This document shows positions 596-38,800 of a DNA stretch of 64,000 bases, piece after piece. Source of the DNA: Octopus sinensis (Eukaryota). Both the position numbers and the translations under genes were made by a program. The notes under the pieces were generated by a model. It made no database searches. It was not told where the DNA came from and saw only the letters and a list, made by a program, of their open reading frames with translations. The first letter of the stretch is position 1; each line of letters starts with the position of its first letter. The stretch lies in assembly GCF_006345805.1 (NCBI RefSeq), contig NC_043008.1:43524001-43588000 (forward strand), read 5' to 3'.

Positions 596-935
596 TGGCA
601 CATCGTTAGCAAATGCCCGAATCTGGCATAACGTGCATAAAAAAAGACGCCATCGCAATGTGGTAAGAATGATCCATTGGGAGCTCTGTGGAAATCACGG
701 CCTACAAAGAGCAAAGATGTGGTATGAGAGAACCCCAGGAGTCACTGAAAACGAGAATTGTAAAATCCTGTGGGATGTGATCCAGTGTGATCACCTGACC
801 AGACATAGGAAACTGGACATCGTTGTGATGAATAAAAGAGAAAGACCATGCATGATAATTGACATAGCATGGCCTGGTGACAACAGGATCAATGTGAACG
901 AAGAAGAAAAAATTATACAGGAGCTATGTATAAGC
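590..935 (+). mobile_element. R4/Dong-like non-LTR retrotransposon C-terminal fragment (restriction-like endonuclease)
   Basis: HIVSKC...RRHRNVVRMIHWELC...KILWD...KLDIVVMNK...CMIIDIAWPGD; interrupted frame. Confidence 0.8.
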
Positions 936-939
936 GTTA

Positions 940-1720
940 TATATATATATAGGCTTCTTAGCTTTCTGTATAATGTTTATGCGTAGGCTTTATTGACTTT
1001 ATATATTGGTTTTAAGTATGGACTTTATTATAGGCTTTCTATATAAGCTCAATGCATAGGCTTTAGTAATATGGCTATATATAAGCTTTATGTAAAAGCT
1101 TTATGTACAGGCTTTATGTACAGGCTTTATATACTCTTTACTCTTTTACTTGTTTCAGTCATTTGACTGCGGCCATGCTGGAGCACCGCCTTGAATCGAG
1201 CAACTCGACTCCGGGACTTATTCGTTTGTAAGCCCAATACTTATTCTATTGGTCTCTTTTGCCGAACCGCTAAGTAACGGGGACATAAACACACCAGCAT
1301 CGGTTGTTAAGCGATGCTAGGGGGACAAACACAGACACACAAACACACACACACATATATATATACATATATACGACGGGCTTCTTTCAGTTTCCGTCTA
1401 CCAAATCCACTCACAAGGCTTTGGTAGGCCCGAGACTATAGTAGAAGACACTTGCCCAAGGTGCCACGCAGTGGGACTGAACCCGGAACCATGTCGTTGG
1501 TAAACAAGCTACTTACCACACAGCCACTCCTGCGCCACATATATATATGTATTACCTATCGGCCTTATGAATAAGCTTTATCTAAAAGCTTTGCATATAT
1601 GCTTTATGTATAGGCTTTATATACGCGTTCTATGTATAGGCATTGTCTATAGGCTTCATAGCCTATAGTCTTTGTGCATAGGGTTTATGTATAGGCTTAA
1701 ACATGCGCTTGGTATATAAT
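940..1720. repeat. Degenerate ~13-bp TATAGGCTTTATG minisatellite, interrupted by a SINE
   Basis: Repeated tataggc motif at 940-1130 and 1560-1720. Confidence 0.8.
1134..1536 (-). mobile_element. tRNA-derived SINE family A (full length)
   Basis: Head GGCGCAGGAGTGGCTGTGTGGTAAG, GGTTCAGTCCC B box, internal (TA)/(GT) tract, (GTAAAAGA)n tail; many copies in the window. Confidence 0.9.
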
Positions 1721-6076: not shown

Positions 6077-6370
6077 CTATACTGTTAGTTCTTCATATAT
6101 TGGAGAATTACAAATTTGAGCTGACTTTTCTGATAGTGGATTTCTGCTTTCACATACATCTAGAGGGTTAAGCTGTGAAGACGTTGATCCTTGACAGGAC
6201 TCAACTGAGCTGGGATTTTGCATGTAGCAATAGTCATGCTCTTCAAATCCTTGACTGGGTTCATTAATACGAACTGGAGTGTTTATTTGCATGGGGAAAT
6301 AACCTTGTTCAGCAACGTCTTGAATTGTTGATGTGTTAGCATTGTTTATACTGTTCTGAGCGTATTGTAT
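6077..6370 (-). CDS. Membrane protein probable last exon (cytoplasmic tail)
   Basis: ttgcag acceptor, 98-codon open frame IQYAQNS...EHDYCYMQ...SPIYEELTV*; the link to the TM exon needs one or more intervening small exons. Confidence 0.65.
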   Translation of the reverse strand: MQYAQNSINNANTSTIQDVAEQGYFPMQINTPVRINEPSQGFEEHDYCYMQNPSSVESCQGSTSSQLNPLDVCESRNPLSEKSAQICNSPIYEELTV

Positions 6371-6400
6371 CTGCAATAGACAATATGTGTATATATATAT

Positions 6401-6454
<54 letters not shown>

Positions 6455-6642
6455 CTTATATATATATATATATATATAATACATGGAAAGAAACAAGTTT
6501 AAAATAATGACTATTACATATTTTCCTTTACTGGAGCAAAGAATTTATATTCTAAATAAATGATACAGAAGATGGAGCATGTAAATATGTATATATATAT
6601 ATGTATGTATATGTATATATGTATATATGTCTATATATATGA

Positions 6643-6683
<41 letters not shown>

Positions 6684-6765
6684 ATAATATATATATATAT
6701 GTGTGTGTGTGTGTGGTGGTGGTGTGTGTGTGGTGTGTGTGGTGTGTGTGTGTGTGTGTGTGGTG

Positions 6766-6796
<31 letters not shown>

Positions 6797-7445
6797 TGTG
6801 TGTCTGTGTCTGTGTGTATAAAGAGAGAGAGAGGATTTAGAGACAAAATGCTATTTAGTAATTCGATCAATACTGAACGTTACTATCTATAAAAACCATA
6901 TAGAAAGTAATTAAATATATTATAATTATTATTCTAAAAATCACAAAACAAAACAAACATTATTTCCACTACGCGCATTTCATGACCAAATATATAAATT
7001 GATAACATTAAAAGTTAATATTAATTCGATTTAAAAATATAGCCACTCTTCAGGTCAAAAAATAACATAAAATAAATGAAGATATTATATAATTAAACAA
7101 TAAATATATAAATATATGTATTTTAACAGTAAATAATCAATAAAATTTAACAATAATTAGTAAAAAGTGCTGATATTCTTTTCCCATATTATCTATCAAC
7201 AATATTTTAATTGAAGGTGGGTGATTACTATTAACATTTATATATCTAAGGTTTTCATTAATTTTATGGAATGGTTGGGTTTTACCTGTTATTAAATTAA
7301 AATTAGCATCTAAATAATTAACATTATAGTTCTCTTTATCTATAGTAATACCTAATCCATATCTTTAAAAAGAACTATATAGTTTCTTCTTATATATATG
7401 TTCTATTGGTGTTCTATTGGTTTTTCTCTCATTGCACAAAAAATT

Positions 7446-7519
<74 letters not shown>

Positions 7520-7601
7520 GTGTATGTATATATGTGTGTGTGTGTATGTAGTATGTATGTATGTGTGTATGTATGTATGTACGTATGTATTACATATAGA
7601 C

Positions 7602-7661
<60 letters not shown>

Positions 7662-10600
7662 CATCTATATATATGTATGTATATATAGACAAATACATAC
7701 ATGCAAACACACACACGCACAAACTCAAGAAGGGAATAAAACAAGAGTAAAGATTAATGATATATGTGTTTACCTGATTCTGAGAACGATGATGATGATG
7801 ATCAAGAATGATATGATGACTGCAAGGGTGCCAATAACTAAAGAAAAAAAAAACAATAAGATAGTCAAACAATATTTTAAGTATATTAAGTAGAAGCTAA
7901 TATACCTAATGTAATTATCAAAAACAAATTGATCACCATTAAAAATTACTAATGTAATTAAAAAGAATTCATTAATTTTAATGATAATTGCCGTCAAAAT
8001 TAAGGGAGACAATTCCTAGATGAAAACTGATAAAAAATTTGAATGTGGACATGCTTTAAGAAGAAAGACTGGTCATTGCCAGATATGGGAGATAAATCTA
8101 GATATATTTCGGTCTTATTAAACCTCTACAGTAATATATATTGGTATTCATTTTTACCAGACCCCAACTCTCCCTACTGCATAGTCCCATTAGATATTCT
8201 TAAAACAGTTTGAATGGTGAACTTGTCACTCCTCTTTTGGACAAGGATTACCTTTATTACTATTGATTTTTCGTTTCATCATGAGTGTAATTTTTAACTC
8301 TTAACTCCTTGTACTACATCCCAGGAGTTGTACAAACCTTGTCCCTCGTTCATTTGGAGGGATAAAGCCCTAATCCTTTCTTCCATCATTCAGTTTCATT
8401 TTGTCACAGAATTATTACAAGACTTGGAAAATTTCAATATGATTTTAGGAGTTAATTAATTCCAAGTTTTAGTGTTAGGGAGTTATTATGCTAAGTTTGT
8501 TAATTTCACTTAACTTTCTGTATTTCATTCTGATATTTTTGCTGCAGTTTTTAAACTGTCAAACACCAGCTAAATAATGGCAAATTCATTTTCCTAGTTT
8601 CTCCTTTATTTTCAAAATTAGTTAAAACAAAGGTAGAATATTTGAAATAAAAAGGGACAAACTCATTCAAACTTTCTTGGTGCAGTTATTAAACTGTTGA
8701 TCGAATTCAATATTGAGTTTTGAGAAAAACCCACTCTCAAGAATAAAATCATGTTTGAGAGGAGCTAACTGTTATCCATACCTCACAATCCTATTTCTTT
8801 ATTACCCACAAGGGGCTAAACACAGAGAGAACAAATGGATTAAGTCAATTACATCGACCCCAGTGCGTAACTGGTACTTAATTTATCGACCCCGAAAGGA
8901 TGAAAGCAAAGTCAACCTCGGCAGAATTTGAACTCAGAACGTAACGGCATACGAAATACTGCCAAGCATTTTGTCTGGTGTGCTAACGTTTCTGCCAGCC
9001 CACCACCTTTTAGTGTAAGGGAGTTATTACGTCCACATGGATTGTGCCATGCCTCACAATCCATGACAGAACATGACCCATATTTTCAATACATGACGTT
9101 AAGTGGCTACCATTCCAGTGATAATCAAATAATTATTACAGAATTTCTAACTTCTAAATTCACCCAGAGGACATTAGATCTTCAGCTTTGAGCTCTTGTG
9201 GAAGACATTTGCCCAAGGTACCATGTAGAGGGACTGGACTTGAAAACATGGAGTTTCAGAAAGAAACTTAAATAATGAAAATATATTTGATGATAAATGA
9301 AGACAAAAATAATTACCTATTTTCATAATGTTCGTAACATTCGTAACGTTTGTAACGTGACATGATTTATTTGATTGTATTTTCTCTCCTTTCTCCTCTA
9401 TAAAGTAAAGAATAAATTTTCATTAAAACTTGACAAAAATAACTCTGAAATATGCAAATATTATTATTGAACTGAGAAGTCCAATCCTGTTTCATATGAG
9501 GATTGTCCATCTGATGATTTCCATCAACTTCATCATCATCATTATCATCGTTTAATGTCCGCTTTCCATGCTAGCATGGGTTGGACGATTTTGACTGAGG
9601 GCTGGCGAACCAGACTCCAATCTAAGTTTATACAGCTGGATGCCCTTCCTAACACCAACCACTTCGAGAGTGTAGTGGGTGCTTTTACATTTAATTAAAC
9701 ATGGCACTTTGTTCTGGTATTCCCTCTTTCCAATAATTACACCACTCTCTCACTTCCCTCCACTATGATTTCTACATGTTTTCTCACCTCAAACTGGAAT
9801 TCTTTTATTCATTTATTCTTTTATTTGTTTCAGTCATTTGACAGTGGCCATGCTGGAGCATACTCTTGGGTTGGTTGCTTCCTGCATTATCCATCCAACC
9901 AGTTGATGTTTGTGTATATGTGAGGAAAATATGTATGTGTATAAGTGTGTGTATTTATACTAATGTTGATGTCTGACATTTAAAATAAACAATATTTAAA
10001 TAAGACAATTTCAGATACACTGTATACCTTTTGGTATTCGAGTAAATTCTGTCACCGAACTATTCTGCAATTTTCTTTCTTCATTTGTTTTGAATTTAAA
10101 CTCTGGGTGATTCTTGGTTAAGCTTATCTGAAATGATAGATTTAAAACATCGTTAACATAGCTCAGTTGTTAAGGCACTGATAATGGTTTTCCTCAGTTC
10201 CCTGCCAAGGTGTTGATGTTGTTTGTCCCTACACTCTCTATTTGTATTTTTTTTAGTGGGGAAGACATTTTAAGTACTTTCCCACCCACCTTCCTCCAGG
10301 TCAATCAATCAATCAATCAATCAATCAAATCAATCAATCAGTCAAACAACTAATGATATTCATTACACAAAAGTTTAATAAGTAGATTCTTCGGATTGAC
10401 TTTTTTAACTAGGTATTTGTGATACCTGTGCTGATGGCACGTAAAAAGCACCATCAGTACGTGGCCAATGCCAGCGCCACCATGACTGGCTCCTGTGCTG
10501 GTGGCACGTAAAAAGCACCAACCGATTGTGGCCGCCGCCAGCCTCCCCAGGCACCTGTGCCGGTAATACATAAAAAGCACCCACTACACTCTGAGTGGTT

Positions 10601-11795
10601 GGTATTAGGAAGGGCATCCAGTTGTAGAAACACTGCTTGATCAGACTGGAGCCTGGTGCAACCTCCTGGCTTGCCAGACCTCGGTCGAACCGTCCAACCC
10701 ATGCTAGCACAGAAAACGGACGTTAAATGATGATGATATATATCTATCAACAGGTTATTGACATTTCTGATTTTTATTAGAAGACTGGCAGTCCATGCTA
10801 CACTGATGGTAGAATGTAGATTTATACTGAAAAATTCATGAAATAGTCAACAATTATACACTGCTCCCACTGCTTGCAGCAGTAAGATGTAACACTTTGG
10901 GGTAGGTATTTGCAGTGAAGTGGAACAGACCAGTAAGAGTTAAGTAACATTGGAGATGAATTTTCAGTTGTTCAGTTGGGGGTGGGGAGACACTTTTTGA
11001 TGGAAGTGTTCAGTTGATTACATTGACACCATCCTCCTCCTCCTCTCATCATCATCATCATCATCCTCATTTGTGTCCTGGCACCAACACTAGTGAAGAT
11101 TGCCTTGCAACTTGTAAGGCTAAAGCCCTAAAGTGGCCCCTATGGAAGAGGGAGAACAGAAGAGTGGGAGGTGATTCTAGGAAGACGGATGGGGGGATGG
11201 TAAATGAGAGGTGAGGGGTGGGGAATAAGGCAAGGAACAGAATAAGAGGAAAGGGTTGAGAGAAAACAGGAGAGATAGAATTAAAAGGGGATGGGAGGGG
11301 TTTTGTGTATATGTAGTAGGGGCCAGGTCTAGAGCAGTCCATCATAATAAGAATGTTTCAGAAAAGAACTAGAAGAAAAGTTGGTTCCACTGAGAGTTTG
11401 GACCCAGCCATTTTGAAGCATGAAATTCACTCCCCTAAAACATGCAATCAGGCCCCTATCATCTTTAGATGTTTTAAAATAACTGAAGAAAATAACTTCA
11501 CTTCACTGATTCTGAAGGATTTATCGAAGAAATGGAGTTTTAAGCTTGTAACTTCATCGTCTTCATACGTCTTTAGATTAAAATACATGATATGACTATC
11601 TCCGTAAAAAGTGGAACGATTCCATGTCAAGTTTCTGGAGAAAGAAGATAACTTGTCTTGAATAAATTCTACAACAAACTTTCTTTCTTGTTCTTCAGGA
11701 GAAATAACTTTCAACAGCCAATTTTTGCCTGAAAAATAAAGTTAGAAAACATGTCTTTTAGTGGTGTGTGTGTGTATAGATTTATATGTATATAT

Positions 11796-11832
<37 letters not shown>

Positions 11833-14800
11833 CACATACACACACATACATATGTATATATATATAAAATACAAAATGGGACAAGAACGCAAAACATTCA
11901 AATAGACGATACAAAAAACACGGACGGGTCATTCGAAGCCTCTAATCTTCAGTCAAGAACCGGATCATCCTTGCAATTTTGGCTGATTAATAATGCTACA
12001 CATAATTACCAATGATTAAAATTCTTAAGATCTTCACATTAAGTAAACATAGAAAAATAGATATGTGAATTCCATGCAAATTATTCCTTAAATATCCTTA
12101 ATTTCAATTTCAAATTTCTGATGCTGCTTTGAATTATTACAAAATGGTTAACTCCCTTGTAATAGCTGCACCCATTAGAGGGACCACATGTGTTTCATTT
12201 AGTTGTTGAATGAAATCTTACTTTTCCATAGTTTACACGAATATTTAGCTGGGATTGTCTTAGTGATGTTAACACAACCATATTCTTCTCCAGTACGTAT
12301 TCCTGTCATAACAATCTGAAAAATGTTTAGAGAAAACTTTAAGCTCGTTAGTTTAATTATAGATTCAGATTAACAAAAATGTCAACATTGATAAAAGGGA
12401 AATCCTTTGAGAGCGCAACCTGTTCACTGTGCGGCAGCGAATTTTGTCAGTGAACAGGTTTGGTAGCCTTCAACTAACACTATCTCCTCCGAGACCCTGC
12501 AACGCAAGTTGACCAAAATTGAGAGTATGATAGAAGAAGGGTTGCTCTTCCTTCCGTAGAAGAAAAAACATTCAAATCAGACCATGTCAACACCAAAAAT
12601 TATTTACATCAAAACGGTGATTTTTTCCTATGAAAATTCCTACATTTTACAATTTTTTTGACTGCTGTGTCACCATTTTTTGGTGTATTTCAACCAGAAA
12701 AATATTCACTTAAAGAGAATAACAAACTACATAATGCAAAATTTTTACTATTAAAAAATTCCAATTCTAAAGGGCCGAAACAAACCTGAGCAACGCCGGG
12801 TGATACTGCTAGTAAGTAAATAAGTAAAATAAAAAAGCAAACATGGTGAAAATTCTCACTTTGGATATGTCAAAAGATTCGTTATAATCTTCAAAGTATA
12901 TTTCAACCTCATCAATGCTTACGGTTCCAATATTGGTAGAAGCAGAGAATGTGGGGGAATAAGCTGACTTTCTGAATGTTAGTTCTTGTGAAGAGTTTGT
13001 TCCATTGCTGGTCACTCCAACAAATATCGTTACCTGTGTGACGAGGCTAATTAGTTTGGAATGAGAGGTTAGTTCTATTATCCACATAAGATCTGCAAAA
13101 AAAAGAATAAAATAAAATAAAAATACAATAAAAAATGGTATAGTAGTTGTGATACATTAAAAGAAAAGTACTGTAAATACATACATACATATATACATAC
13201 ATACATACATACATACATGTGTGTATGTGGAAGGGGTGTTTGCATCTCCAAGTCTTGATGCTGAGCAATAGTTGTAAACGAGTACCACCGTCATACAAGC
13301 GGTGGCCTTCACTTCAAACCTGATGTGAAAATGTGTAATTTTATATCATTTGATTGGAAACTGGTTTCAGAGTTGGGAAGATTTAACTCTTGATAATAAC
13401 ATCAACACATCAACATGGATCATTTAGAATTTCCTCTGCTCACTCTCTCTTTTTTTTTACCATTAACATCTTGTAAAAGCCACACAGGCAGCAAAGTAGA
13501 ACTACTTCATAGTTTCTAATAAAGTGACATAAGAAATGCCTTCTATCAACTTACCATTTCTCAATGAACACTCATTGTAAGGATTACTTTGGTTAAGAAT
13601 ATCACTACAGGAATATATCTTGGTAGTTTCCATGTTCTTCAGTTTGATCTAAAGTAAAAGAAAAAAAAACAAACAAAATTGTGTCATCTGGAGTTACCTT
13701 GGTTTAGACAGGTGTTGTTTTGTTCTGGATCCAGTAATTAAACAGATGAGAAATACCTGACTTATCCATCTACTCAGCAATTTCACCTCTACTTGAACTG
13801 AAATGTTTTCTCAAATATTGAAAAAAAAGACCATCTTTACAGGGCTCAAGAGCACCATCCGAGCATGATCATTGCCAGAGCGGCTAACTGGCTTCCATAC
13901 CAGTGGCATATAAAAGGGCACCATTCAAGCATGATCGTTACCAGCGTCGCCTTACTGGCACCTGTGCCAGTGGCATGTGTAAAAAGATTCAAGCGAGGTC
14001 ATTGCCAGTACTGCCTGACTGGCCCCCGTGCTGGTGGCATGTAAAAAGCACCGACTAGACTCTCGGAGTGGTTGGCATTAGGAAGGGCATCCAGCTGTAG
14101 AAACTCTGCCAGATTAAGATTGGTGCCTGGTGCGGCCATCTGGTTCACCAGCCCTCAGTCAAATTGTCCAACCCATGCCAGCATGGAAAGCAGACGTTAA
14201 AAGATGATGATGATGATGATGATGATATGTGTGCATACATGTATATATCTTACTGTATTTTCTCAAATCTAGAAACCCTGGAAACAAAATATAAACTGAA
14301 GTTGAATCAGCCAGTTGTATTCCTTTGTAACTGGAAAAAAAAAAAAGAAAAGAAAATAATATATAAATAAAAATAAAGGGTTTACTCACAATCTTTTCCG
14401 GACAAGATTTTCCTGTGGTTAATAACTCTGTTCTTGACTTTCTATTCCTTTTCGTGGGCAGAAACAATGATGCGTTTGATGTCGTAGAATTTGTTTTAAA
14501 CATTATATTCTTTTCACCATAAGGCCTTATCTCAATGGAATAGTCATAACTGTCGTTTATCTCTCTATGTATAAATTTAAGGTTCCAGTGTGTCCCTAGA
14601 AATTAATAGAAAAAATTTGGCATCAATGACAGCAAAATTTCAAAATTAATAAACTTCAAAGGATAATTGTGATTATAATGAGGGATATTTAGAATGAAAC
14701 TATCAACATATGATCAAAAAGACATTTATTTTCTCTGCTTTTCCATCATAGATTTATTACACTTCTTTTCATTTAAAATCTATTTAGATTTCAACTCTAA

Positions 14801-16003
14801 CGGATCCGGCACCTTTCGTGGAAGCTTTCACCCGCTTCTTAGGACCGACTGACCCATGCTCGACCGCCGTTGGCACGGAACCCTTCTCCACTTCGGTCTT
14901 CAAAGGTCTCTGGACAACCGATGCTGGTGCGTTTATGTCCCCGTTACTTAGCGGTTCGGCAAAAGAGACCGATAGAATAAGTACTGGGCTTACAAAAGAA
15001 TAAGTCCCGGGGTCGAGTTGTTCGATTAAAGGCGGTGCTGCAGCATGGCCGCAGTCAAATGACTGAAACAAGTAAAAGAGTAAAAGAGAGTAAAAGAGAG
15101 ATTTATTTATTCGTTTGTATAGTAAACAATGGCATGAGAAGATTTAAAAACTTTAAATAGTCATATGTGTAAATTGTACACATACTATCTCTGGTAGTTT
15201 GGTACCAAATGCACTAAACAGTGCTTTTCAAACTACCATAAATCCTCGAGTATAATCCGCATTTTTTCCCCAAAATTTAAAGGTCAAAATCCTTAGTGCG
15301 TACTATATACAAGGTTAGAAATGAAAAGTATTTTCTAAGCAATGTCCACGTCTCTGTTTGCTGTCCGGCAATGTTTATTCAGACGTATTTTGTGATGTCG
15401 GGCACGAAAATACCTTAAGCTAAGCCTGAAAGCAATGAAGTCATAAAAGAATCATCCATAACTTGCAATAAGCAACATTTATTAAACCTTATTACTGTTA
15501 TTTATTTATTTTCTGCAAACAAAATGCACAAAAAAGCTACATGTTTACATTATGTTATATATACAATAATAATAAAGGACATTATCGTATAAATTTTTAG
15601 AAATCAAGGACATTATATAGACCTCCTTGACTCAAGTTAGAGAAGATGTGCGTATTGTACACAAGGTTTAGGTTTTTCAGAGGTACAGCCCCCTAAAAAT
15701 CCTCTGCGTATTTTACTCAAGGGCGGATTATACTCAAGGATTTACGGTATTTTAAATATCATCCTTTTTCTCTTCCTAATACTTTTTAAATACACCTTGC
15801 TCTATATTTTTAATGTATAAACATTAAAAATACCCGGGTGTGGCTGAGGGGTTAAAAAGCTTGCTTTGCATCCAGGTGTTTTCAGGTTCAGTCCCTGTGC
15901 TCAATAACCTTAGGCAAGTTTCTTCTACTATAACTCTACTCTGACCAGAATCTTCTGAGTGGATTTGGTAGACAGAAATAGAAAGATATCTGTAAGATAT
16001 TTG

Positions 16004-16041
<38 letters not shown>

Positions 16042-16042
16042 C

Positions 16043-16118
<76 letters not shown>

Positions 16119-18631
16119 GGGTATTCCTTAAGTAGGTTAAGAGAGAAAACAAAGTAAAAAAAGAGAAGAATAAAGAATAAAGCAAAAGTCTTGCATTCTT
16201 CTAATTTCTGGTTTCCAGGACAACCTGACAGGCCCTCAATAGCATACATTTCTTGAAGATCTTCATTTTGAGCAAATACCTGAAATAGAATTATTCAACA
16301 AAGTTAGCAACAGTGCAATGTATAAAATAGTTTGATTGTGATGATGATGATGATGATGATGAGACGGAGGATGAACATCATCATCATCATCATATATCTA
16401 TTACTAAACAATTAAAAAATTAAGAAATTGGAAAGTCAAATAAGGATGTTGGAGGTTGCCCAATGGAATTCGGTATATGCACTGTGCAGTGATTTAGGTT
16501 GCAATTAGATCTGTGGAAAAATTTGAAGGTATGAAAACAGTGGTGGTTGCATGTACCTAGGGCCTCATTATACTTATTTAGTAGTATTGAAAATGATAAT
16601 GAAGAATTATTCAAAATTTCTGACTGCCAATAGAGAAAAGAGCTGGTTTCTAACCTCAAAGCTCCTTCATTGGAATTTCAACATCAACAACAGGATATTT
16701 TTGTTTGTATGTATGGCGCGTAAAAAGCACCCACTACACTCACGGAGTGGTTGGCGTTAGGAAGGGCATCCAGCCGTAGAAACATTGCCAGATCAGACTG
16801 GGCCCGGTGCAGCCTTCTGGCTTCCCGGACCCCAGTTGAACCGTCCAACCCATGCTAGCATGGAAAGCGAACGTTAAACGATGATGATGATGATGATGAT
16901 GATGTGGAATGCCTCTTTTAGGCATAACTTACATGCTGAGAGATGTTCCTGCCTCGAGGCTTTCACTCTACACACACCAGCTCAATATGATTCATCTTGT
17001 TGCTTGTATATGTAATTGTATAACATTCTCTCTGTTTTTGTTTTTTTTGTTTTTGTTGTTGTACACATTTGCTTGTTTTCTCCCCCAAAATTTAATACTC
17101 TTAGCTTAGATTTTTGGGGACAACCAGATTTGAACAGTCTCAAGTGTAACCAGCCAAAACTGTAAGGATGATTTGGAAACTTGACTGATGAGAGAAGACT
17201 GCAAATGACCCCATCCTTGTTTTAACCTGTCCATTTTTTTGTTGTGTTCCTGTCTGTCTTTGAATCATTTATCTGTTCAGATGTTTTGTTGTCATCTGTT
17301 GCAGTCTTGTTCCATATTTTTGGATCTATATATACATAGAGTGGTGTATGAACCCTTTTGCTCACTTTGTGAGTAAGTATGTATCTAAATTCCACGTGAC
17401 TCTTTTACTCTTTGTTTAGTCCCCCTCGGGCTTTCTTCTTTCTTTCCTCTTTTCCTTTTCTTGCTCCCTCTTTCTCACATTTCTTTTCCTCTTCATTTAT
17501 CTCCCTTGTACCTTTCTCTGATTCATATATGTGCATGCATGTATATATCTTACTGTATTTTCTCAAATCTAGAATCCCCGGAAACAAGTAATAAATTGAA
17601 GTTGAATCAACTGGAAAAAAAAAGAAAAGAATATATAAATAAAATAAAGGGTTTACTCACAATCTTTTCTGGCCAAAATTTTCCTGTAGTAAATAACTCT
17701 ATTCTGGACTTTCTATTCATTTCCGTAGGCAGAAACAATGTGTTTGATGTCCTAGAATTTGTTTTAAACACTATATTCTCTTCACCATAAGGCCTTATCT
17801 CAAACGAATAGTCATAACTGTCGTTTATCTCACTATGTATAACTTCAAGGTTCCAGTGTGTCCCTAGAAATTAATAGAAAAAAACTTGACATCAATGACA
17901 GCAAAATTTCAAAATTGATAAACTTAAAAGGATAATTGTATAATTGCTTGATAATCATTAACAATTGCAATGAGACATTTCTTGCTTTCTCCATCAAAAC
18001 ATGAAATTCCAATTAATTAAGAATTCTTTTGCATCGATTATTCAGTACATCAACCCTTAAAATATTTTTCCAAATTCTTAAAATCAGAACATTACTGCTT
18101 AAGCCATTTTAGAAAATATAATTTTTATATTGAACATTAGCCGAAAGAGTTGTTGCAAATTTCCATAATGATTCGTGATTGATTGGAGATATTGACTTTA
18201 CATTTGATTTTGTTTCTAATTGCTGACAGCACAACTGTGAATTGAACCTCTAAATGTAGAATAATGTGTCTTTCCAAGGGATTGAATAGCAACAATAAAG
18301 TCTGGTCTCATAAAATTGATCTTAGCAGTTGAGCAAAGTAATCTTACAATTATTATGCTGTGTGTGTGTGTGTGTGTGTGTGTGTGCATGTGTGTGTATG
18401 TTAAGAGTATTCCTTAAGGAATTTAAAAGAGATAGAAAAGCGAAAAAGAAAAGAATAAAGAACAGTTCTAAAGCAAAAAGCTTACATTTTTCTAACTTTT
18501 GGTTCCCATGACATTGTGACAGGCACTCTAAAGCATACATTTCTTGAAGATCTTTATTTTGAACAACTGCCTAAAAGAGAAATTATTCAGCGAAAATTAG
18601 CAACAGTGCAATGTGTAAAATAGTTTGATTG

Positions 18632-18663
<32 letters not shown>

Positions 18664-21600
18664 CTCCTTGAGAGTTTTTCTCTGGTACCACACCATTACC
18701 AGCTTATCTTTTCCTTGATACTCTCATCCTCTCTTATATAAATGTGGGGTAGCCAGGCATCTTCACTACAGCAAGACACCTCTATCTTTGCTTGTCCCTC
18801 GCATAAAATCACCTCTCCACCCACTTAAATATTCTTTTCTCCTCTAGGCACAAGGTCCGAAGTTTTTAGGGAGGGGGGCCAGTTAATTAGTTCGACCCCC
18901 CCAGTATGCAACTGGTACTTAATTTATTGACCCCCAAAAGGATGAAAGGCAAAGTTGATCTCGGCAGAATTTGAACTCAGAACATAAAGACAGACAAAAT
19001 ACTGCTAAGCAATTTGCCCGTTGTGTTAACGTTTCTGCCAGTTCGCCACCTTTAGCGTGGCAGTGATTCTGTCAGCTCCCTGCCTTAAGTATCATGGCAA
19101 ATACAACACTTCTTTTATAAAACAGATAATAAATAAGAATAAATAAGAATGAAAGGCAAAGTCCTCCCACTTAAATTTTGTCCCCACTTCTTTGAGAGAT
19201 TTCCCTTTTTTCTTGTCGTTTCCTGTCTTACAACTTACTTGGCAACCTCACATATTCAAAAGTGGTTGGCATTAGGAATGGCATCGAGCCATAGAAACCA
19301 CACCAAAATAGACAATGGAGTTTGGTGTAGTTTCAAGTAGGGAACCCGTGCTAGTGCGGAAAACGGACGTTAAACGATGATGATGTATAACAAAAGGGGT
19401 TATAACAAAAGGGTTGTAACAAAAGGGTTATAAGAAAAGGTTATTAAGAAAGGTTGTAACAAAGGTTATAACAAAAGGGGTTATAATAAAAGGGTTGTAA
19501 CAAAGGTTATAACAAAAGGGGTTATAATAAAAGGGTTGTAACAAAAGGTTATAACAAAAGGGTTATAACAAATGCTTTCCGTTAAGGTTGTAGTTGTGGC
19601 TGTGCCAGTTCTATGGAAATGACACCCATGTGTCATGGTCGTTGCTGGTGCCATATAAATGGCATCTTTGAACCATAGTCATGGTCGTTTGCTGCTGGTT
19701 GTAGTTGTGGTCAAGGATGGCATCATGTAAATGATACTTGGGCATCAGAGTTGTGGTCATCAATGGTGCCAGGTAAATTGGTCCCTTGGAAATCATGGTC
19801 GTTGGTCGTAGTCTTTGCCAATGCCATGCAAATGGCACCAATGAATTATCGGAGTTGCTACTAGTGCCATGTAGACAGTACCTATTTGGGAATCATAGTC
19901 CTGGTTGCTGCCAGTGTCGGTGGCACGGAAAAGCGCCCATTGCACTCCTGGAATGGTTGGCATTAGGAAGGGCATCCAGCTGCAGAAACCAAGCGAAATC
20001 AGATTGCAACCTGGTGCAGCTCTCCAGTCCATCAGCTCCAATCAAACTGTCTAACCCATGCCAGCAGGGAGAGTGGACATTAAATGATGATGATGATTTG
20101 TAATTAAATTAATGAGTAATTCTAATGAATTTGTCAATTTCAGTGTGTGTGGGCACACACCTAGCACACCCAAAATTTATGCCCTTTGTATGTTTGCATA
20201 TTTGTGTTTGTGTATGTTTGCTAGTGAGTGTATATATATTTTGATTTAATTACCTTATAACCAGTATGCTCGTTAACTTCAATAGAACTTGGCTTTTCTC
20301 TACTGTTTAATTCAAAATTATTGTTGAAGCATTTTTGCAACTCTAAACTTCTTGTGGTTTTCGATTCATTGTTCAAAGTAACTGCGGCTGAGTAGTAATA
20401 TGCCTCAAAGAAACAAATTTCTACGTTCCACGTTGTGTTCTGGGCATCTGGCAAATAAATTGAGAAAGAAAAGACATTACCGATATATTTTTTCAAAAAT
20501 CCAAACATTTTTCAATGTGAATGAATACAGTGAGAAAACTCACATGATACACTGGAATTGGTTTTGAAAATAGCATGAAAATCTGAATAACCATGTAAAC
20601 CTGAATTCTTCCTACGTTTTCACTCAAGAAAAAAATGCTTTATTTTTACTTGTTTCCTTTATGAATCAAGAATAAATCTGATTGTATCATTATCTAATTA
20701 TGATTTTTTTTTTTTTTTGCAATATCCACTCATATTTCATGATTGAGTGGTTAATGTTAATGTTAGGGAAGGCAGCAAGCTGACAGAAATGTTAGCACAA
20801 TGTTGAAATACTGTGCCTTCATCAATTAAGTTGGAAAATGTGGGAAGAGCTGGACGAAGAGGGTCATGACGTCAATGGTCAAGGAACTGACCGGAAAAGG
20901 AAGTGCGAAAGGAGAAGTGGAGCGAGAGAGGTGAGTGTCAGGATCTTGTATGATCAAGGCCATAGTGGAGAGGACACACATATCACCGCTGAAAGCAGTA
21001 TTCTGGTACAACATGCTGCTCCAATCAGGTCAGGGCAAAGAGTCCGTGCCACATAGAATGATATTCAAATATGAATGGTGGCATCCAAGTAAACCATCAA
21101 GATGCCCTGTAGAAGAGTGGGGACCCATCTTTGTGGAGGTGGGAGATGAAGTCTGGGTGAAGCCACCAAAGGCTCAACTCAGTGGAACAGAAGAATAGGG
21201 ATGGCTGTCAATTCCAAAAACAACAGTTCTGTGGATGGAATTCAACATCATGTCTTAGATGTTCGTAGGATTGTCGCTCCGTCAGATGATGACTGTGGTG
21301 AAGAGGAAGAGAATGAGGTTCCCAGCTTAAGAAGATCACAACGTGCAAGGTTGTAGTTGTGGTCAAGGATGGCATCACGTGGGTGGTAGATTTCGACATG
21401 GAGTGAAGTGAAGAAGTGATCGTTGAGGTCAGTGGAGCATTTGGAGATGAGCCAGAAGAAAAGTGTCATGATGTCAATGGTCAAGGAACTGACCGGAAGA
21501 GGAAGCATGAGAAGGGAAGTAAGGGGAAAGAGGCGAGCATCAGGCTCTTTTTGCCCACCAGAGGCATCGTGAACGGACGTCAGGGGATTCGTTTCCTGGT

Positions 21601-22169
21601 TGGTCAGATAGCAGCTGCTTATACTGGGTGACAGGGGTAGGGCAGGATTGCCGGAGAGATTACTGCTTGATAGGGGTCGATGAGAGAGGAAGGTAGGTAA
21701 ACCTCTTTTCATTTTCCATGCCTTGCAGAAAATAATAAAGAATTTGGTAAAATAATATTGTCATTATAAAAACTGTTATTTAGAACAAAATTTAACATGA
21801 AATTTTGACTGAGGGTTTTAATTTGGACCACTTTAAAGGAGTAGATTTGTTTCATACAACTAGGTACAATCTCAAGTAATTAAACCAAGCAATGGATGAA
21901 GTCAACCCCGCAAGAACAGGAACAGAAATACTTCCACAGGATCCCCAACAATCAAATTCTACTCCATAGACTTTGGTCGACATGTCACTATTGTACAAGA
22001 CACTAACTAATCCAAAGTGACATACAGTGGAAACTGACCTGAAGACAAACTCCTTGACCATTCACAGCCAGACACAATGATTGCGCAAAGGAATAAATAA
22101 CAAAGAGGACTTACCTGTAAAATGAGGAAAGGTGAAGAATAAAATACTCCAAAAGGAAAGAACCAACAT
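6077..22169 (-). CDS. Uncharacterised single-pass type I membrane protein with five repeated extracellular modules
   Basis: Phase-consistent exon chain on minus: 22169-22115, 20447-20254, 18570-18486, 17863-17661, 16279-16195, 14595-14390, 13648-13555, 13092-12860, 12315-12222, 11728-11502, 10127-10028, 7837-7774, then probable small exon(s), then 6370-6077. Signal peptide, many N-x-S/T sites, [21 protein letters not shown], Tyr-motif tail. Confidence 0.82.
7774..7837 (-). CDS. Membrane protein exon 12 (transmembrane helix)
   Basis: ctttag|(V)[22 protein letters not shown]|gtaaac; 64 nt, phase 1-2. Confidence 0.8.
8792..9009 (-). mobile_element. tRNA-derived SINE family B
   Basis: AAGGCGGCGAGCTGGCAGAA head, GAGTTCAAATTC B box, GCCTTTCATCCTTTCGGGGTCGATAAATTAAGTACCAG central block, AAAGAAATA tail. 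Confidence 0.88.
10028..10127 (-). CDS. Membrane protein exon 11 (stalk)
   Basis: tttcag|[34 protein letters not shown]|gtatac; only phase 0 is open. Confidence 0.72.
11502..11728 (-). CDS. Membrane protein exon 10 (3' boundary uncertain)
   Basis: tttcag|(S)[13 protein letters not shown]...[13 protein letters not shown]; donor GAA|gtgaag is weak and chosen by analogy with the FDISK end of exon 8. Confidence 0.7.
12222..12315 (-). CDS. Membrane protein exon 9
   Basis: tttcag|[32 protein letters not shown]|gtaaga; 94 nt like exon 7. Confidence 0.85.
12340..12812 (+). mobile_element. Helitron-like non-autonomous element (left boundary approximate)
   Basis: 3' end cctgagcaacgccggg (degenerate GC hairpin) followed by CTAG|T at 12809-12813. 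Confidence 0.55.
12860..13092 (-). CDS. Membrane protein exon 8
   Basis: ttgcag|(D)[10 protein letters not shown]...[19 protein letters not shown]|gtgaga; 233 nt. Confidence 0.85.
13555..13648 (-). CDS. Membrane protein exon 7
   Basis: ctttag|[32 protein letters not shown]|gtaagt; 94 nt. Confidence 0.85.
14390..14595 (-). CDS. Membrane protein exon 6 (paralogue of exon 4)
   Basis: ttctag|(W)[26 protein letters not shown]...GKSCPEKI|gtgagt; 206 nt. Confidence 0.85.
15236..15747. mobile_element. Tc1/mariner-pogo type MITE
   Basis: TIRs CCATAAATCCTCGAGTATAATCCGC / GCGGATTATACTCAAGGATTTACGG flanked by TA (15234-35 and 15748-49). Confidence 0.85.
16195..16279 (-). CDS. Membrane protein exon 5 (paralogue of exon 3, GC donor)
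   Basis: tttcag|[29 protein letters not shown]|gcaaga; 85 nt like exon 3. Confidence 0.75.
17661..17863 (-). CDS. Membrane protein exon 4
   Basis: ttctag|(W)[26 protein letters not shown]...GKFWPEKI|gtgagt; 203 nt. Confidence 0.85.
18486..18570 (-). CDS. Membrane protein exon 3
   Basis: ttttag|[29 protein letters not shown]|gtaagc; 85 nt. Confidence 0.85.
19386..19572. repeat. ~14-bp GGTTATAACAAAAG minisatellite
   Basis: About 13 units with a higher-order three-unit period. Confidence 0.9.
20254..20447 (-). CDS. Membrane protein exon 2
   Basis: ttgccag|[12 protein letters not shown]...EHTGYK|gtaatt; phase 1-0. Confidence 0.82.
20830..21700 (+). mobile_element. Gypsy-like LTR retrotransposon remnant (integrase C-terminus plus LTR-like direct repeats)
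   Basis: [20 protein letters not shown]...[10 protein letters not shown]; 41-bp direct repeats at 20863-20903 and 21465-21505. Confidence 0.6.
22115..22169 (-). CDS. Membrane protein exon 1 (signal peptide)
   Basis: [19 protein letters not shown]|gtaagt; 55 nt, phase 1. Confidence 0.8.
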
Positions 22170-24401: not shown

Positions 24402-25841
24402 TGTGTGTGTGCGTGTGTGTGTGTGTGTGTGAATTTGTGAAACTCCCCGAGTCAGCTAAATAGTTCTGGGGTCAACACAGTAATGGCTCTTGTCCCTGTG
24501 AATCAGCATCAAGGCTCGTAACAGCTTAAGAAATATTATGTAACTATATAACTCAGCAGTGAGTTGTTTTGAATGGAAAATCTCAGAATAGAAAAGGGGA
24601 GAAGCTTCAATTTGACTAAATGAATATCTGTATGAGAAGTAAGTATGACCGTGATGGTACATAGCTTAGTGTACCATCATGACTGAAGCAAGTAAAGAAA
24701 TAAAGGAAATAAAGGAATATATATACATATATATATATATATATCATCATCATCATCATCATCGTTTAAAGTCCGCTTTCCATGCTAGCATGGGTTGGAC
24801 GGTTCAACTGGAGTCTGGGAAGCCAGAAGACTGCACTAGGCCCAGTCTGATCTGGCAATGTTTCTACAGCTGGATGCCCTTCCTAACGCCAACCACTCCG
24901 TGAGTGTAGTGGGTGCTTTTTACGTGCCACCGACACAGGTGCCAGGGGAGGCTGGCAGCGGCCACAATTGGTTGGTGCTTTTTACATGCCACCAGCACGG
25001 AGGCCAGGCAAGGCTGGCAATGGCCACGATCGGATGGTGTTTGTTACATGCCACCGGCATGGAGGCCAGTCGATGCAGCGCTGGCTACGGCCATGTTCAG
25101 ATGGTTCTCTTATGTGCCACCAGCACTCAGCGCTTGCCGCCGGCACTCAGCGCTTATATATATATATATCAAAGGCTGGTTAATTGGCAGCTCATTACAG
25201 CTGTTTCTTACATAATTTTTAATAGAAGAATGAGAACATTCCATCATTATAAAAGACTAATCATCAGATGAGAAGTAATTTTAGAAAATAAAATAGTTTA
25301 CAGGAATACAGCAGGGATATGTCTGTTGAGGCTAAGCTACGAATGGGAGAAACATGCACACACACACCACACACACACACACACACACCACACACTCACA
25401 CACACACTCACACACAGATGGTTCAAATGTACAGAAAACAAAAGCCAGACATGTGAGGGAACAACAAGCAGATGTTTGACACTTGGGAAAAATGGAAAAG
25501 ACTTTAGGGTTTTGAGCCTACAGACTTCATCAGGGAGGGATGAGAGGAATAGAATGGAGGGGAGAAAAAAAATGTGTTAACCCTTTTGTGTATTTATTTG
25601 AAATAATACTTTGTGTTTCTTTCAATTACCTTAAATATAACAAAAAATTTAGTAAAATAACTTAGTTATCGTTCATCTAGTGTAAGGAACATTAATTGTG
25701 ACTAAGTTTTGGTGGACGATTTTAATTCAAAACTTACGAAAACAAGACATTTGTACTACAGAGCCAGAGGTGGTTTCAGCCAGGTTGGTAACGAAAGGGT
25801 TAAGATTAATGGATTGACATGCATGGAAAATATTGAACAAA

Positions 25842-35085: not shown

Positions 35086-35330
35086 CGGTCTACTACGCAC
35101 ACACATAACAGGCTTTATTCAGTTTTCGTCTAGCAAATCCTCTTACAAGGCTTTGGTCGAACTGAGGTTATAGTAGAAGACACTTGTCCAAGGTGCCACA
35201 CAGTGGGACTGAACCTCAAACCATGTATTTGGGAAGCAAGCATCTTACCTCACAGCCACTCCTGCCCCTTATTTATTTTTTTATTCATGTATCTATTTAT
35301 TATTTTTTTTTGCTCTCGTTGCAGGTTAAA

Positions 35331-35375
35331 ATGCTTGATGTTACAGCAAGTATTTCTGCCAGTTTTGTTCTCTAG
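35331..35375 (+). promoter_or_regulatory. Out-of-frame uORF overlapping the upstream LIG3 ATG
   Basis: aaaATGc at 35331, [14 protein letters not shown], starting 7 nt before ATG 35338. Confidence 0.55.
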
Positions 35376-35809
35376 GACTCTAATAAACAAACTTTATCGC
35401 AGCCCCTTTGCTTTTACGAGGCAGGGGTTTCCATTTTACCGTGCAGCAGCTTTTTACCTCAATCCTTTGCTTAGCTCTTTGGATTTGAATTCCATTCCTC
35501 TCCAGCTTCTGCCTTCACGAATAATGGCCGAGAACAGATTCATTGTGGTGTATGCCAAGCTGGGCACATCCAGCTGCAAGAAATGCAAGACCAAAATTGA
35601 AAAGGCTGCTTTGAGGATTGGTAAAGTGGTACCGAATCCTTTCTCTGATGATGGAGGCGACATGAAGCAATGGTACCATCCCTCTTGTATCTTTGAAACA
35701 TTTCTTCGAGCAAGGCCTACCACCAAGATTATCGAAGAAGCTGAAGACCTGGATGGATTTCAAGATTTGCAACAAGACGATAAGGATGCTGTTAACGACT
35801 TAATTAAAG
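35338..35809 (+). CDS. LIG3: LIG3 coding exon 1: mitochondrial-type leader plus PARP zinc finger
   Basis: Acceptor ttgcag ends at 35324; ATG 35338 is in frame with ATG 35524 (MAENRF...); donor AAAG|gtactt, phase 1. Confidence 0.92.
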
Positions 35810-38800
35810 GTACTTTTTATGACATAATTTTTTAACCCTTCACTGACACCCTTTCGATGAACACGACTTCTTAACCATTCCAGTTAACATTTAGGTTTGA
35901 TGAGGGTTTTGTTGTTGTTTAGTAAAACACCAGTTTGTTTAACGTCTGTTTGTACAAACTGGCTGAGTTTAGACAGGAAGCTATTCCACCATCATCATCA
36001 TCATCATCATCAACATTATTATTATTATTATTGAATGAGAGAGCAGTGCATGCCATCAAAGTGACACTGGGGTAAAATATACGAAGCCCAATATACCCAT
36101 CATGACTACCCGTCTATTAAGGGTACCCAGGCACATGCATCACAACCATCCGCGTGGTACTCAAACCCACATCCCTTTATTAATGCGGCTAAGTGTGTTA
36201 CCATTACACCAGTGAATTAGCCTCCCTGTTTCTGTCAAATTTAAGAACCTCTATCAGTTCATAGTTGTTCTTTTTAAACAAACTTTCTACGTGCTTTCAG
36301 TGCAAATGGTTTTATTATACGGCGCTGGGTTTTACAATCCTGTAAATAATAATAATGGTATTTATATAACCCTACATATTTGTAAAACCTGGTGCTGTAC
36401 AATAACGCCATCTGCATCGAAAGCACATACACCTGACAATTCTTGAAAAGTCGCATTGCGACGAAAACCGCTTTGAATTAATATATATTTAAAAAAAAAA
36501 ATTTTTTAATTTTCCATACACCCATTTTTATTAAAATTTACCTTCAATTTAGCATTCTGCCTTTTTATAATTTTTCCTTGCCTATCATTTCTCCACATGC
36601 AGTCAACACAACCCCACCATTTATTGATTTATATATATATATACTGTCATCATTATCATCATCATCATCTAGCGTCCATTGTCCATGCTAACATGGGTTG
36701 GATGGTGTGACCAGACTTGGCAAGCCAGGAGGCTGCAGTCTGATTTGGCATGGTCCTTATGGCCGGATGCCCTTCCTAACGCCAAATCCATACATTCACA
36801 TGTGACAGGTTTCATACAATTTCTGTCCACCGAATCCACTCACAAGGCTTTGATCAGCACAGGGTCCTAGTAGAAGACACTCGTCCAAGGGTGCCTTGCA
36901 GTGGGGCTGCGCCTGAAACCGTTTATTTTCTTTAATAATATAAATTACATTCTAGATTTATTTCTTCTTTTTTTTTGTTTCAGACTTCTTCAATAATCCC
37001 CAAAATAAAAGGAAACGGTCTGGCACTAGCAGCACCGGCAGCAGCAGCAGCAGCAGCAATGTAACAGCTTCTAAAACTTCCAGTACCCCTAAAAAGGAGG
37101 AGAAGAAAAAGCCTTCTGCTGATGTGAAAGGTAAGGGTCCATCTTTCGTTATTTAAATTATCTTTTGCTTGTTTCAGTCATTGGGCTGTGGCCATGATGG
37201 GGCACTGCTTTGAAGGGTTTTAGTCAAACATATCAAGCTCTGCACCTTTTTTGTCTCAGGGGCTGCTGGTCTTTTGCTGAACCAGTCAGGTTGTTACAGG
37301 GACATAAACAAAGCAACACAGGTTGTCAAGTGGTGAAGGACACACACACACACACACATGTATATCATCATCATCATCATCGTTATCATCATTTAACATC
37401 TGTTTTTCCATGGTGGCATGGGTTGGACAGTTTAGCAGGAGACTGCACCCGGCTTCACTGTTTTTGTGAGGCTTTTACAGCTGGATGTCCTTCCAAACAT
37501 CTATCTATCTATCTGTGTGTGTGTCTATGACTGGCGCCCGTGCTAGCAGGGTGCAAAGAGCACCATACGAGTGTGATCATTGACAGAGCGTCTAACCGGC
37601 TTCCGGGCCAGTGGGACTTAAAAGGCACCATTCGAGCATGATCGTTACCAGCGTCACCTTACTGGCACTCGAGCCTTGTGTTGTAGAGTATTAAGAGCAC
37701 CATCCGAGCATGATCGTGGCCAGAGTGGCTATCTGGCCTCCATGCCGGTGGCACGTAAAAGACACCATTCGAGCATGATCGTTACCAGCATCGCCTTACT
37801 GGCACTTGTGCCAGTGGCATGTGTAAAAAGATTCGTGGGAGGTCGTTGCCAGTACTGCCTGACTGGCCCCCGTGCTGGTGGCACGTAAAAGCACCCACTA
37901 CACTCTCGGAGTGGTTGGCGTTAGGAAGGGCATCCAGCTGTAGAAACTCTGTCAGATCAAGATTGAGGCCTGGTGCAGCGTTTGGCTCGCCAGCCCTCAG
38001 TCATTCGTCCAACCCATGTTAGCATGGAAAGCGGACGTTAAACGATGATGATGATGAATGGGCTTCCATTCAGTTTCTGTCTACCAAATTCTCTCACAAG
38101 GAACTTGCCCAAAGAGCCACTCAGTATAACTGAACTCAAACCACGTGACTGCAAAGCAGCTCCTTAAACTCGAAGCCCCGACTGGGCCTGATTAAAATTC
38201 TTTCTACTATTATCGTGTGGTGGACATTGGGCATTCTCTGCTGTGGCCTTTTGCTGACCATTGCCTTGCGAATGAATTTCTTTGTTAGGTACTAAATAAA
38301 AGTCTGTCATTTGGGTAGCTACACACGCACACACACACACACTTGTTGGTGAGTGTTTAACATATAAAACCATCAACATGTAGCCAGCCTTGCCTGGCCT
38401 CCGTGCCAGTGGCACATAAAGAGCACCATCCGATCGTGGCCGTTTACCAGCCTCGTCTGGCACGTAAAAAGCACCCACCACATTCATGGAGTGGCTGGCG
38501 TTAGGAAGGGCATCCAGCCGTAGAAACATTGCCAGATCAGACTGGGCCTGGTGCAGCCTTCTGGCTTCCCAGACACCAGTTGCACCGTCCAACCCATGCC
38601 AGCATGGAAAGCGGACGCTAAACGATGAAACGAACGATGATGATGGTATGTGAGGGAGATTTGGAGATTTGGCTGCTATTTCTAGAAGGTTAGGCGATCA
38701 CGTAGAGATTTCATTGGGTGAAGTAGCGCCTTCTCCAAGCTTATCTTGTCGACGTTATGTAAGGGACATAACTCTGGTAATCCTTCATTCAGTGCCCGCA

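Follow-up and report, generated by a model that had tools for sequence, protein, structure and literature searches.

LOC115217897 of Octopus sinensis belongs to a type I membrane glycoprotein family that is restricted to octopods and has predicted PLAT/LH2-like modules

The LOC115217897 gene and its exon pairs

LOC115217897 is a minus-strand gene of Octopus sinensis located in a 64,000-nucleotide (nt) stretch of contig NC_043008.1 (GCF_006345805.1, positions 43,524,001 to 43,588,000). This whole stretch is called the window here, and all coordinates count from its first letter. The gene product belongs to an octopod-restricted, uncharacterised family of type I membrane glycoproteins, with an ectodomain made of modules that are each encoded by one long and one short exon; for one of these, module 4, structure prediction gives an eight-stranded beta-sandwich at good confidence, and the solved structures nearest to it are almost exclusively PLAT/LH2 domains. 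The gene was rebuilt from the raw sequence by listing the stop-free segments of the minus strand between 5.9 and 22.4 kb and by reading the splice signals around motifs that an earlier, sequence-only reading of the same DNA had picked out. This yields 14 exons with a coding sequence (CDS) of 22169..6346, whose translation is identical to XP_036363780.1 (P0001 in our set), the 581-residue RefSeq "uncharacterized protein LOC115217897" of O. sinensis, and the DNA of the gene matches chromosome CM016870.1 of GCA_006345805.1 base for base at ~43.5 Mb. The match of the exon chain to the RefSeq model is far beyond chance, and the unbroken, phase-consistent minus-strand chain of the sequence-only reading is thereby reproduced. 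That reading regarded the gene as unrecognised, which holds in so far as it has neither name nor domain and no publication on the locus was found in literature searches; it had, however, already been modelled by RefSeq. The window overall is AT-rich metazoan DNA with many microsatellites and repeats resembling short interspersed nuclear elements (SINE-like), and no further family member was found within it, LOC115217897 being the sole copy there.

All exons are on the minus strand. The first (E1, 22115..22169, 55 nt, phase 0 to 1) carries the ATG and the signal peptide, encodes exactly the N terminus of XP_036363780.1 and is modelled by AlphaFold2 (AF2) as a helix over residues 2-19. It is followed by five exon pairs, in which the long exons measure 194, 203, 206, 233 and 227 nt, each in phase 1 to 0, and the short exons 85, 85, 94, 94 and 100 nt, each in phase 0 to 1; these sizes and phases are those of the sequence-only reading (194-233 and 85-100 nt). 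Module 1 consists of L1 (20254..20447, opening with WNVEI) and S1 (18486..18570), module 2 of L2 (17661..17863, WNLEV...WPEKI) and S2 (16195..16279), and module 3 of L3 (14390..14595, WNLKF) and S3 (13555..13648, ending in NEC). L4 (12860..13092, WIIEL) and S4 (12222..12315, ending in YSC) form module 4, while L5 (11502..11728, WLLKV) and S5 (10028..10127) form module 5. All five opening motifs, and the segments that close the modules, are found where they had been reported. Between S5 and the transmembrane exon (7774..7837, 64 nt, phase 1 to 2) lies an 81-nt stalk exon (9317..9397, phase 1 to 1), Ser/Asn-rich and with three N-x-T sequons; it had been missed in the sequence-only reading, was found via the RefSeq protein, and its skipping preserves the frame. 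The acceptors are all AG and the donors all GT, save that of S2, which is GC: the S2 intron donor (16193-16194) reads aat|gcaaga where its duplicate S1 has gtaagc, and the RefSeq model uses this GC donor.

The predicted product is a secretory-pathway, single-pass type I membrane protein. Besides the signal peptide, the full-length AF2 model displays a long helix (residues 544-580) over the hydrophobic transmembrane stretch, in line with the receptor-like topology that had been proposed. The protein has 17 N-x-S/T sequons and is predicted to be heavily N-glycosylated, which was likewise expected from the sequence-only reading. Conserved cysteine pairs are carried by the short-exon segments in the family alignment.

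The cytoplasmic end of the gene differs from what had been anticipated. The transmembrane exon ends in phase 2, and splicing to the canonical acceptor at 6370 gives the last coding segment as annotated (6346..6370), RYNTLRTV followed by the stop TAA at 6348-6346. The tail exon with an open frame down to 6077 of the sequence-only reading does exist, but in the assembly it is out of frame with the transmembrane exon. The remnant of the ancestral tail (6077..6353, minus strand) stays open over 93 codons, ends in SPIYEELTV before its own stop, retains YxxM and YEEL motifs and is 63% identical to the tail of P0002 (E 1.7e-34), which like P0045 represents the O. bimaculoides orthologue. The orthologues P0046 of O. 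vulgaris, which is 95% identical to P0001, and P0045 of O. bimaculoides read RIRYNTLR-NSINN across the junction, that is, the first frame of the window and then the second; the window therefore lacks one A at 6355-6354, in a short A-run (AGAAC) for which the orthologues indicate one base more, and the tail is truncated to ~10 residues past the membrane. A downstream acceptor at 6350, which would bring the long tail in frame, was considered and dropped, since the orthologues read RYNTLR-NSIN there, favouring the acceptor at 6370 and a frameshift. The chance of a 93-codon open frame in DNA of ~35% GC was estimated at ~0.003. Because the frame is still open and the sister species O. vulgaris is intact, the deletion either arose very recently or reflects a mistake in the assembly GCA_006345805.1. 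In the former case the O. sinensis copy would be signalling-dead or a decoy; in the latter the missing base would be an artefact.

A fifth module gained by tandem duplication in an octopod family

Five modules are present in LOC115217897, as had been counted, but modules 2 and 3 are not independent of each other. The segments S1-L2 and S2-L3 arose by tandem duplication of DNA and, with flanking intron sequence counted in, are 84-86% identical (86% between 17939-17525 and 14670-14225; 84% between 18655-18359 and 16362-16073); the duplication is also found in the O. bimaculoides orthologue. S2 is the duplicate of S1, and L3 that of L2, with 90.6% nucleotide identity. A DNA copy of S1/S2 serving as the short exon of module 3 was sought and none was found; S3 is a different, ancestral short-exon type, which partners the L2-type exon in four-module paralogues. 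Most paralogues display this four-module arrangement, namely L1+S1, L2-type+S3-type, L4+S4 and L5+S5. Thus the ancestral form had four modules, while LOC115217897 and its orthologues in O. bimaculoides and O. vulgaris gained the fifth by tandem duplication of S1-L2.

The duplicated exons are 90.6% and 82.4% identical as compared with 85-95% for the flanking introns, so that the exons are no better kept than their surroundings, and the duplicate pair has a ratio of non-synonymous to synonymous substitution rates (dN/dS) of ~0.65, calculated from small counts (25 non-synonymous and 9 synonymous differences). This divergence is consistent with relaxed or diversifying evolution. The gene had also been called fast-evolving, with which the data are consistent. 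In S2 the first Cys of the C-x3-C pair is lost (AIEG); since this loss (AVEG/AVEV) and the GC donor are both common to the orthologues, they are old and tolerated.

Two further features of the duplicated region were observed. S1 and S2 are each followed by a (CA)n tract, which thus belonged to the segment that was duplicated. On the minus strand, L2 and L3 each have shortly downstream (17519-17575 and ~14230-14290) a stretch resembling an S3-type short exon (VKLKNMETSKIYSC); it may be the decayed remains of an exon copied along with the duplication, or the resemblance may be fortuitous in DNA of microsatellite-like character.

Similarity between modules was assessed with hhalign, using reversed and 60 column-shuffled controls for each pair. 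The alignments are collinear, with E-values of 0.015-0.19. None of the 60 shuffled controls reached the real score for modules 4 and 5, two did so for module 1 against modules 2/3, five in each of three other pairs, and 21 for module 1 against module 5. By this measure, inter-module homology is significant for the recent duplicates only.

In order to define the family, two word-seeded searches of 5.8 billion proteins and one exhaustive HMMER profile search of 1.84 billion representatives were run. The word-seeded searches gave 17-18 clusters at 90% identity, with E-values of LOC115217897 against family members ranging from 0 to 1e-68, and the exhaustive profile search gave 30 hits. The named matches are all from O. 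sinensis, O. bimaculoides, O. vulgaris and Argonauta hians; no squid, cuttlefish, other mollusc or other organism is among the family matches in these libraries, whose coverage of decapodiforms is uncertain. The gene had been proposed as possibly cephalopod-specific, and its lineage restriction is borne out, although the group is narrower: the matches point to an octopod-specific family as far as the libraries reach.

LOC115217897 displays the features of the LOC115217897/LOC115217841 family, namely a signal peptide, four to five modules that open with W-x-h-x-h (h, hydrophobic) on long and short exons, and a transmembrane helix. The alignment and the exon maps also reveal an invariant YGC...C in the short exon of module 4, KNWLLKVIS at the opening of the last module, and NTSTLQ in the juxtamembrane tail; module 5 is the most conserved in the family. 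The paralogues are diverged, with 40-63% identity. One of them, LOC115217915, lies on the same chromosome 8 Mb away and alternates long and short exons in the same way. P0010, P0015 and the X2 isoforms of P0004/P0005 end before the transmembrane segment, which suggests that they are soluble forms. One paralogue carries the automatic UniProt name "Vitellogenin domain-containing protein"; no Pfam vitellogenin match was seen.

The tails of orthologues and paralogues share a juxtamembrane R-x-K..N..NTSTLQ block in the tail alignment and a second conserved block, MQN..V.ISEP. Their tyrosine motifs comprise YFPM/YFTM/YYSM (YxxM), DIYENL/EIYANM (YxN) and, in three genes, a terminal IYEEL; judged by sequence, these could dock SH2 proteins. 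Among the Argonauta tails one has NIYLEI and another a five-fold DIEQLYTQPI repeat. The tail of the A. hians member P0021 was seen to hold at least five DIEQLYTQPIKS repeats. The canonical spacing of an immunoreceptor tyrosine-based activation or inhibition motif (ITAM or ITIM) is not present in the tail encoded in the window.

Predicted fold of the modules

The full-length AF2 model, built from a 16-sequence alignment, is all-beta with a mean predicted local distance difference test (pLDDT) score of 67. Module 1 reaches 86-91 and modules 4 and 5 average ~72-78 (60-85 in blocks of 10 residues), while the duplicated modules 2 and 3 fall below 50. Seven strands are seen in module 1 and eight in module 5, with a spacing like that of module 4. 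When used as a Foldseek query, the full-length model returned mostly long, low-probability alignments to multi-domain beta proteins (Ig/FN3-like, macroglobulin), with KIR, LILR and IL-6R chains at a probability of 0.06-0.21, and the only high-probability match was a coral lipoxygenase chain (0.98, rank 48). As the five-module query was uninformative, a single module was modelled.

Module 4 alone (109 residues, 14 sequences) gave a pLDDT of 84.4 and a predicted TM-score (pTM) of 0.78, all five models being at 80-84, with eight to nine strands and one short helix. In a Foldseek search of this model against the PDB, ranks 1-39 are all PLAT/LH2-containing chains with a probability of 0.99-1.00, TM-scores of 0.52-0.67, a root-mean-square deviation (rmsd) of 3.6-6 Å and 7-19% identity. 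They include pancreatic lipase-related protein 2, pancreatic lipase, lipoprotein lipase and Rab6-interacting protein 1 (Rab6IP1), as well as coral 8R-lipoxygenase and the human 5-, 12- and 15-lipoxygenases; examples are 1bu8 (E 1.7e-3, TM-score 0.60), 8ghb (TM-score 0.66, rmsd 3.6) and 1lox (TM-score 0.67). The C-terminal domain of clostridial alpha-toxin appears further down the list. No Ig/FN3 chain is in the top 50, and the best C2 match in the PDB, 1wfj, has a probability of 0.30 and a TM-score of 0.25. Hence the fold check that was applied to the module 4 model returned a PLAT-like fold and not another one.

The sequence itself gives no such signal. PF01477 does not match LOC115217897, its single modules or 16 family members at E<=10, nor two Argonauta proteins at E<=1; the Pfam PLAT model has a gathering score of 23 bits, and the N terminus of human 5-lipoxygenase (5-LOX), run as a positive control, matches it with an E-value of 4e-30. 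No Ig or fn3 Pfam match was obtained with the family proteins scanned. The matches to TMEM154, RIFIN and EphA2_TM that appear at E<=10 for the whole protein, four single modules and 16 members were discarded as noise driven by the transmembrane segment, and no Pfam domain is assigned to any member. Profile searches of the PDB sequences with the family and module 4 alignments returned nothing relevant, and hhalign of the module 4 profile against the PLAT domain of human 5-LOX, a sequence confirmed as PLAT by Pfam, gave a probability of 0.3%. The PLAT/LH2-like features of the sequence-only reading are therefore retained for the predicted fold of module 4 and not for the sequence; the fold result did not rest on the sequence motifs cited there. 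The other four modules may share the PLAT-like fold, as inferred from the exon-pair design, the strand layout and the weak profile similarity.

Candidate function and alternative readings

PLAT/LH2 domains (PF01477) of lipases, lipoxygenases and Rab6IP1 are the closest known counterpart of the ~109-residue module 4 with its predicted eight-stranded sandwich, whose model fits onto them with TM-scores of 0.55-0.67 across 106-131 aligned columns. The octopod modules differ from them in having no hidden Markov model or profile match and only 7-19% identity, in the conserved Cys pair (YGC...YSC) of the C-terminal part of module 4, and in being predicted to be extracellular and N-glycosylated, as four to five tandem copies in a type I protein without a catalytic domain. 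Tandem repetition of PLAT-type units as the main body of a protein recalls LOXHD1, which consists of 15 tandem PLAT repeats (see PMC8051682); LOXHD1, however, is cytosolic or membrane-associated in stereocilia, lacks a signal peptide and a transmembrane helix and has repeats that Pfam recognises, whereas the octopod family is predicted to be of the secretory pathway, type I and invisible to Pfam. The polycystin-1/REJ (PKD1) proteins are PLAT-containing membrane proteins in surface sensing, and in this respect resemble the octopod family. Sea-urchin REJ proteins take part in gamete recognition (see PMC1934368). Members of the PKD1 family span the membrane 11 times, carry REJ/GPS modules and have their one PLAT domain in the first cytoplasmic loop. 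None of this applies to LOC115217897, which displays a single transmembrane helix and gave no REJ, GPS or PKD Pfam match. Its layout resembles that of immunoreceptor-type type I proteins (KIR/LILR, and the YxxM/YxN tails of the CD28 type), with a signal peptide, beta modules of ~100 residues bounded by phase-1 introns, a transmembrane helix and a YxxM/YxN/YEEL tail, in a multigene, lineage-specific family with variants devoid of the transmembrane segment. In contrast to immunoreceptors, the modules are not Ig-like by fold search, each is split over two exons, and the ITAM/ITIM spacing is lacking. LOC115217897 thus resembles PLAT/LH2 domains in predicted fold, LOXHD1 in repetition and immunoreceptor-type proteins in layout, and it would represent a known fold in a new, lineage-restricted architecture. 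Literature searches returned neither a type I receptor whose extracellular part is a tandem of PLAT-like domains nor a PLAT-like receptor of octopus.

LOC115217897 is probably an octopod-restricted type I glycoprotein receptor with a tandem PLAT-like ectodomain and a role in surface recognition. In lipases, lipoxygenases and polycystin-1, PLAT domains attach to lipid surfaces or to particular partner proteins, and some members bind in a Ca2+-dependent manner. By analogy, the tandem modules would line up outside the cell as an array that binds a lipid-bearing, membrane or protein ligand. Occupancy of this array would be passed on, in the ancestral or orthologous form, through a cytoplasmic tail of ~100 residues with YxxM, YxN and a C-terminal YEEL, tyrosine motifs that may dock SH2 proteins; the O. 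sinensis copy, as assembled, would be without this signalling tail. Judged from sequence and models, a lineage-specific, multigene surface receptor that signals via phosphotyrosine is the most economical reading.

Several points weigh against this proposal. PLAT homology finds no support in the sequence at any level tested. The Foldseek E-values are modest (~2e-3 to 1e-1), and the query is itself a prediction from 14 sequences. The stand-alone model covers module 4 only, modules 2 and 3 being below a pLDDT of 50 in the full model, and the ancestral profile similarity from module to module is marginal, its worst pair being matched by 21 of 60 shuffles. Besides, PLAT domains are mostly cytosolic or part of secreted enzymes, and an extracellular receptor role is an extrapolation.

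Alternatively, the modules may be a generic or novel beta-sandwich, either highly diverged Ig/FN3-like or with a fold of their own, the PLAT match being due to convergence or predictor bias and the protein an ordinary adhesion-type molecule that lacks lipid or PLAT-type binding. The nil PLAT signal in the sequence fits this explanation, as do the mostly low-probability Ig/FN3-like and macroglobulin chains found with the full-length model, the module 4 E-values of just ~1e-3 to 1e-2 and the shallow alignment of 14 sequences behind the model. We nevertheless regard it as improbable, because ranks 1-39 are PLAT domains from several unrelated protein families at a probability of 0.99-1.00 and TM-scores up to 0.67, with Ig/FN3 out of the top 50 and C2 at a TM-score of 0.25, and because the five AF2 models are concordant (pLDDT 80-84). 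The family may also act in cell-cell or gamete recognition or in tissue adhesion through homophilic or heterophilic protein binding, and not in the sensing of lipids, membranes or microbes. Tandem beta-sandwiches followed by a transmembrane helix and a short conserved tail do resemble adhesion molecules; the family is confined to one lineage, in which its paralogues have diverged (40-63% identity); and PLAT domains can bind proteins such as colipase and GPIHBP1, structures of the lipoprotein lipase-GPIHBP1 complex being among the module 4 matches. Nothing in the data is directly contrary to an adhesive role, which we hold to be rather unlikely; the forms devoid of the transmembrane segment (P0010, P0015, P0004/P0005 X2), together with the SH2-type motifs, somewhat favour a receptor that also exists in soluble form over a structural adhesin.

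A separate question concerns the O. sinensis copy itself, which may be decaying or a decoy if the 1-nt deletion is real, the signalling tail being gone and the protein a non-signalling binder or on its way to a pseudogene. The assembly and the RefSeq model both end with RYNTLRTV and a stop, S2 has a GC donor in place of the former GT, a conserved Cys is lost in S2, and the internal duplicates have a dN/dS of ~0.65 with exons no better kept than the flanking introns. On the other hand, the CDS of the ectodomain is unbroken over its full 1.7 kb and has good splice sites, the out-of-frame tail is free of stops over 93 codons and still ends in IYEELTV, which points to a very recent change or a sequencing error, the frame is intact in O. 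vulgaris, and the GC donor and the lost Cys, which the orthologues share, are old and tolerated. A decaying or decoy copy is in our view possible but doubtful. Returning to the surface receptor with PLAT-like modules, a bolder version of it would have octopods evolve and then expand receptors that redeploy PLAT, a lipid- and membrane-binding fold otherwise met inside cells or attached to enzymes, as a tandem extracellular array coupled to SH2-type tyrosine signalling. Such receptors would serve innate immunity or chemotactile sensing by detecting lipids, lipoproteins or foreign membranes, and would be a lineage-specific invention for which other animals offer no described parallel; this we put forward as speculative and unlikely in its full extent.

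Elsewhere in the window, a DNA ligase 3-like gene lies on the plus strand, opposite to the receptor gene, with segments at 35203-35835 and 62914-63378, and probably spans ~35-64 kb. Its exons match the PARP-type zinc finger (PF00645, E 3e-24) and the C-terminal domain of ATP-dependent ligases (PF04679, E 2e-14); an open reading frame (ORF) at 40547-40948 looks by eye like a ligase III exon and has no Pfam match. A SINE-like repeat with copies that are 75-86% identical occurs on both strands, inside and outside the introns of the gene (10571-10737, 14041-14229, 16720-16906, 19919-20097, 24858-25271, 38164-38592, 48945-49307 and others). Three ORF fragments, at 633-986 (plus strand), 61442-61870 (minus) and 7140-7364 (minus), look retrotransposon-like by eye and have no significant Pfam match; the last of them is within the intron between the transmembrane and tail exons. 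Long (TA)n, (CA)n and mixed microsatellites occupy introns at 6380-6870, 7400-7760, 11740-11900, 15990-16130 and 18330-18410.

Cephalopod genomes hold many lineage-restricted genes that are labelled just "uncharacterized", and with LOC115217897 one such multigene family gains a testable structural identity. The analysis also draws attention to a point in the O. sinensis reference where a single base is probably in error or the gene was truncated very recently. If the PLAT assignment is true for all modules, no type I receptor whose ectodomain is a tandem of PLAT-like domains would, to our knowledge, have been described before, and the family would illustrate the growth of a receptor through internal duplication of symmetric exon-pair modules. 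The family may thereby open the study of surface recognition in octopods, be it immune or sensory.

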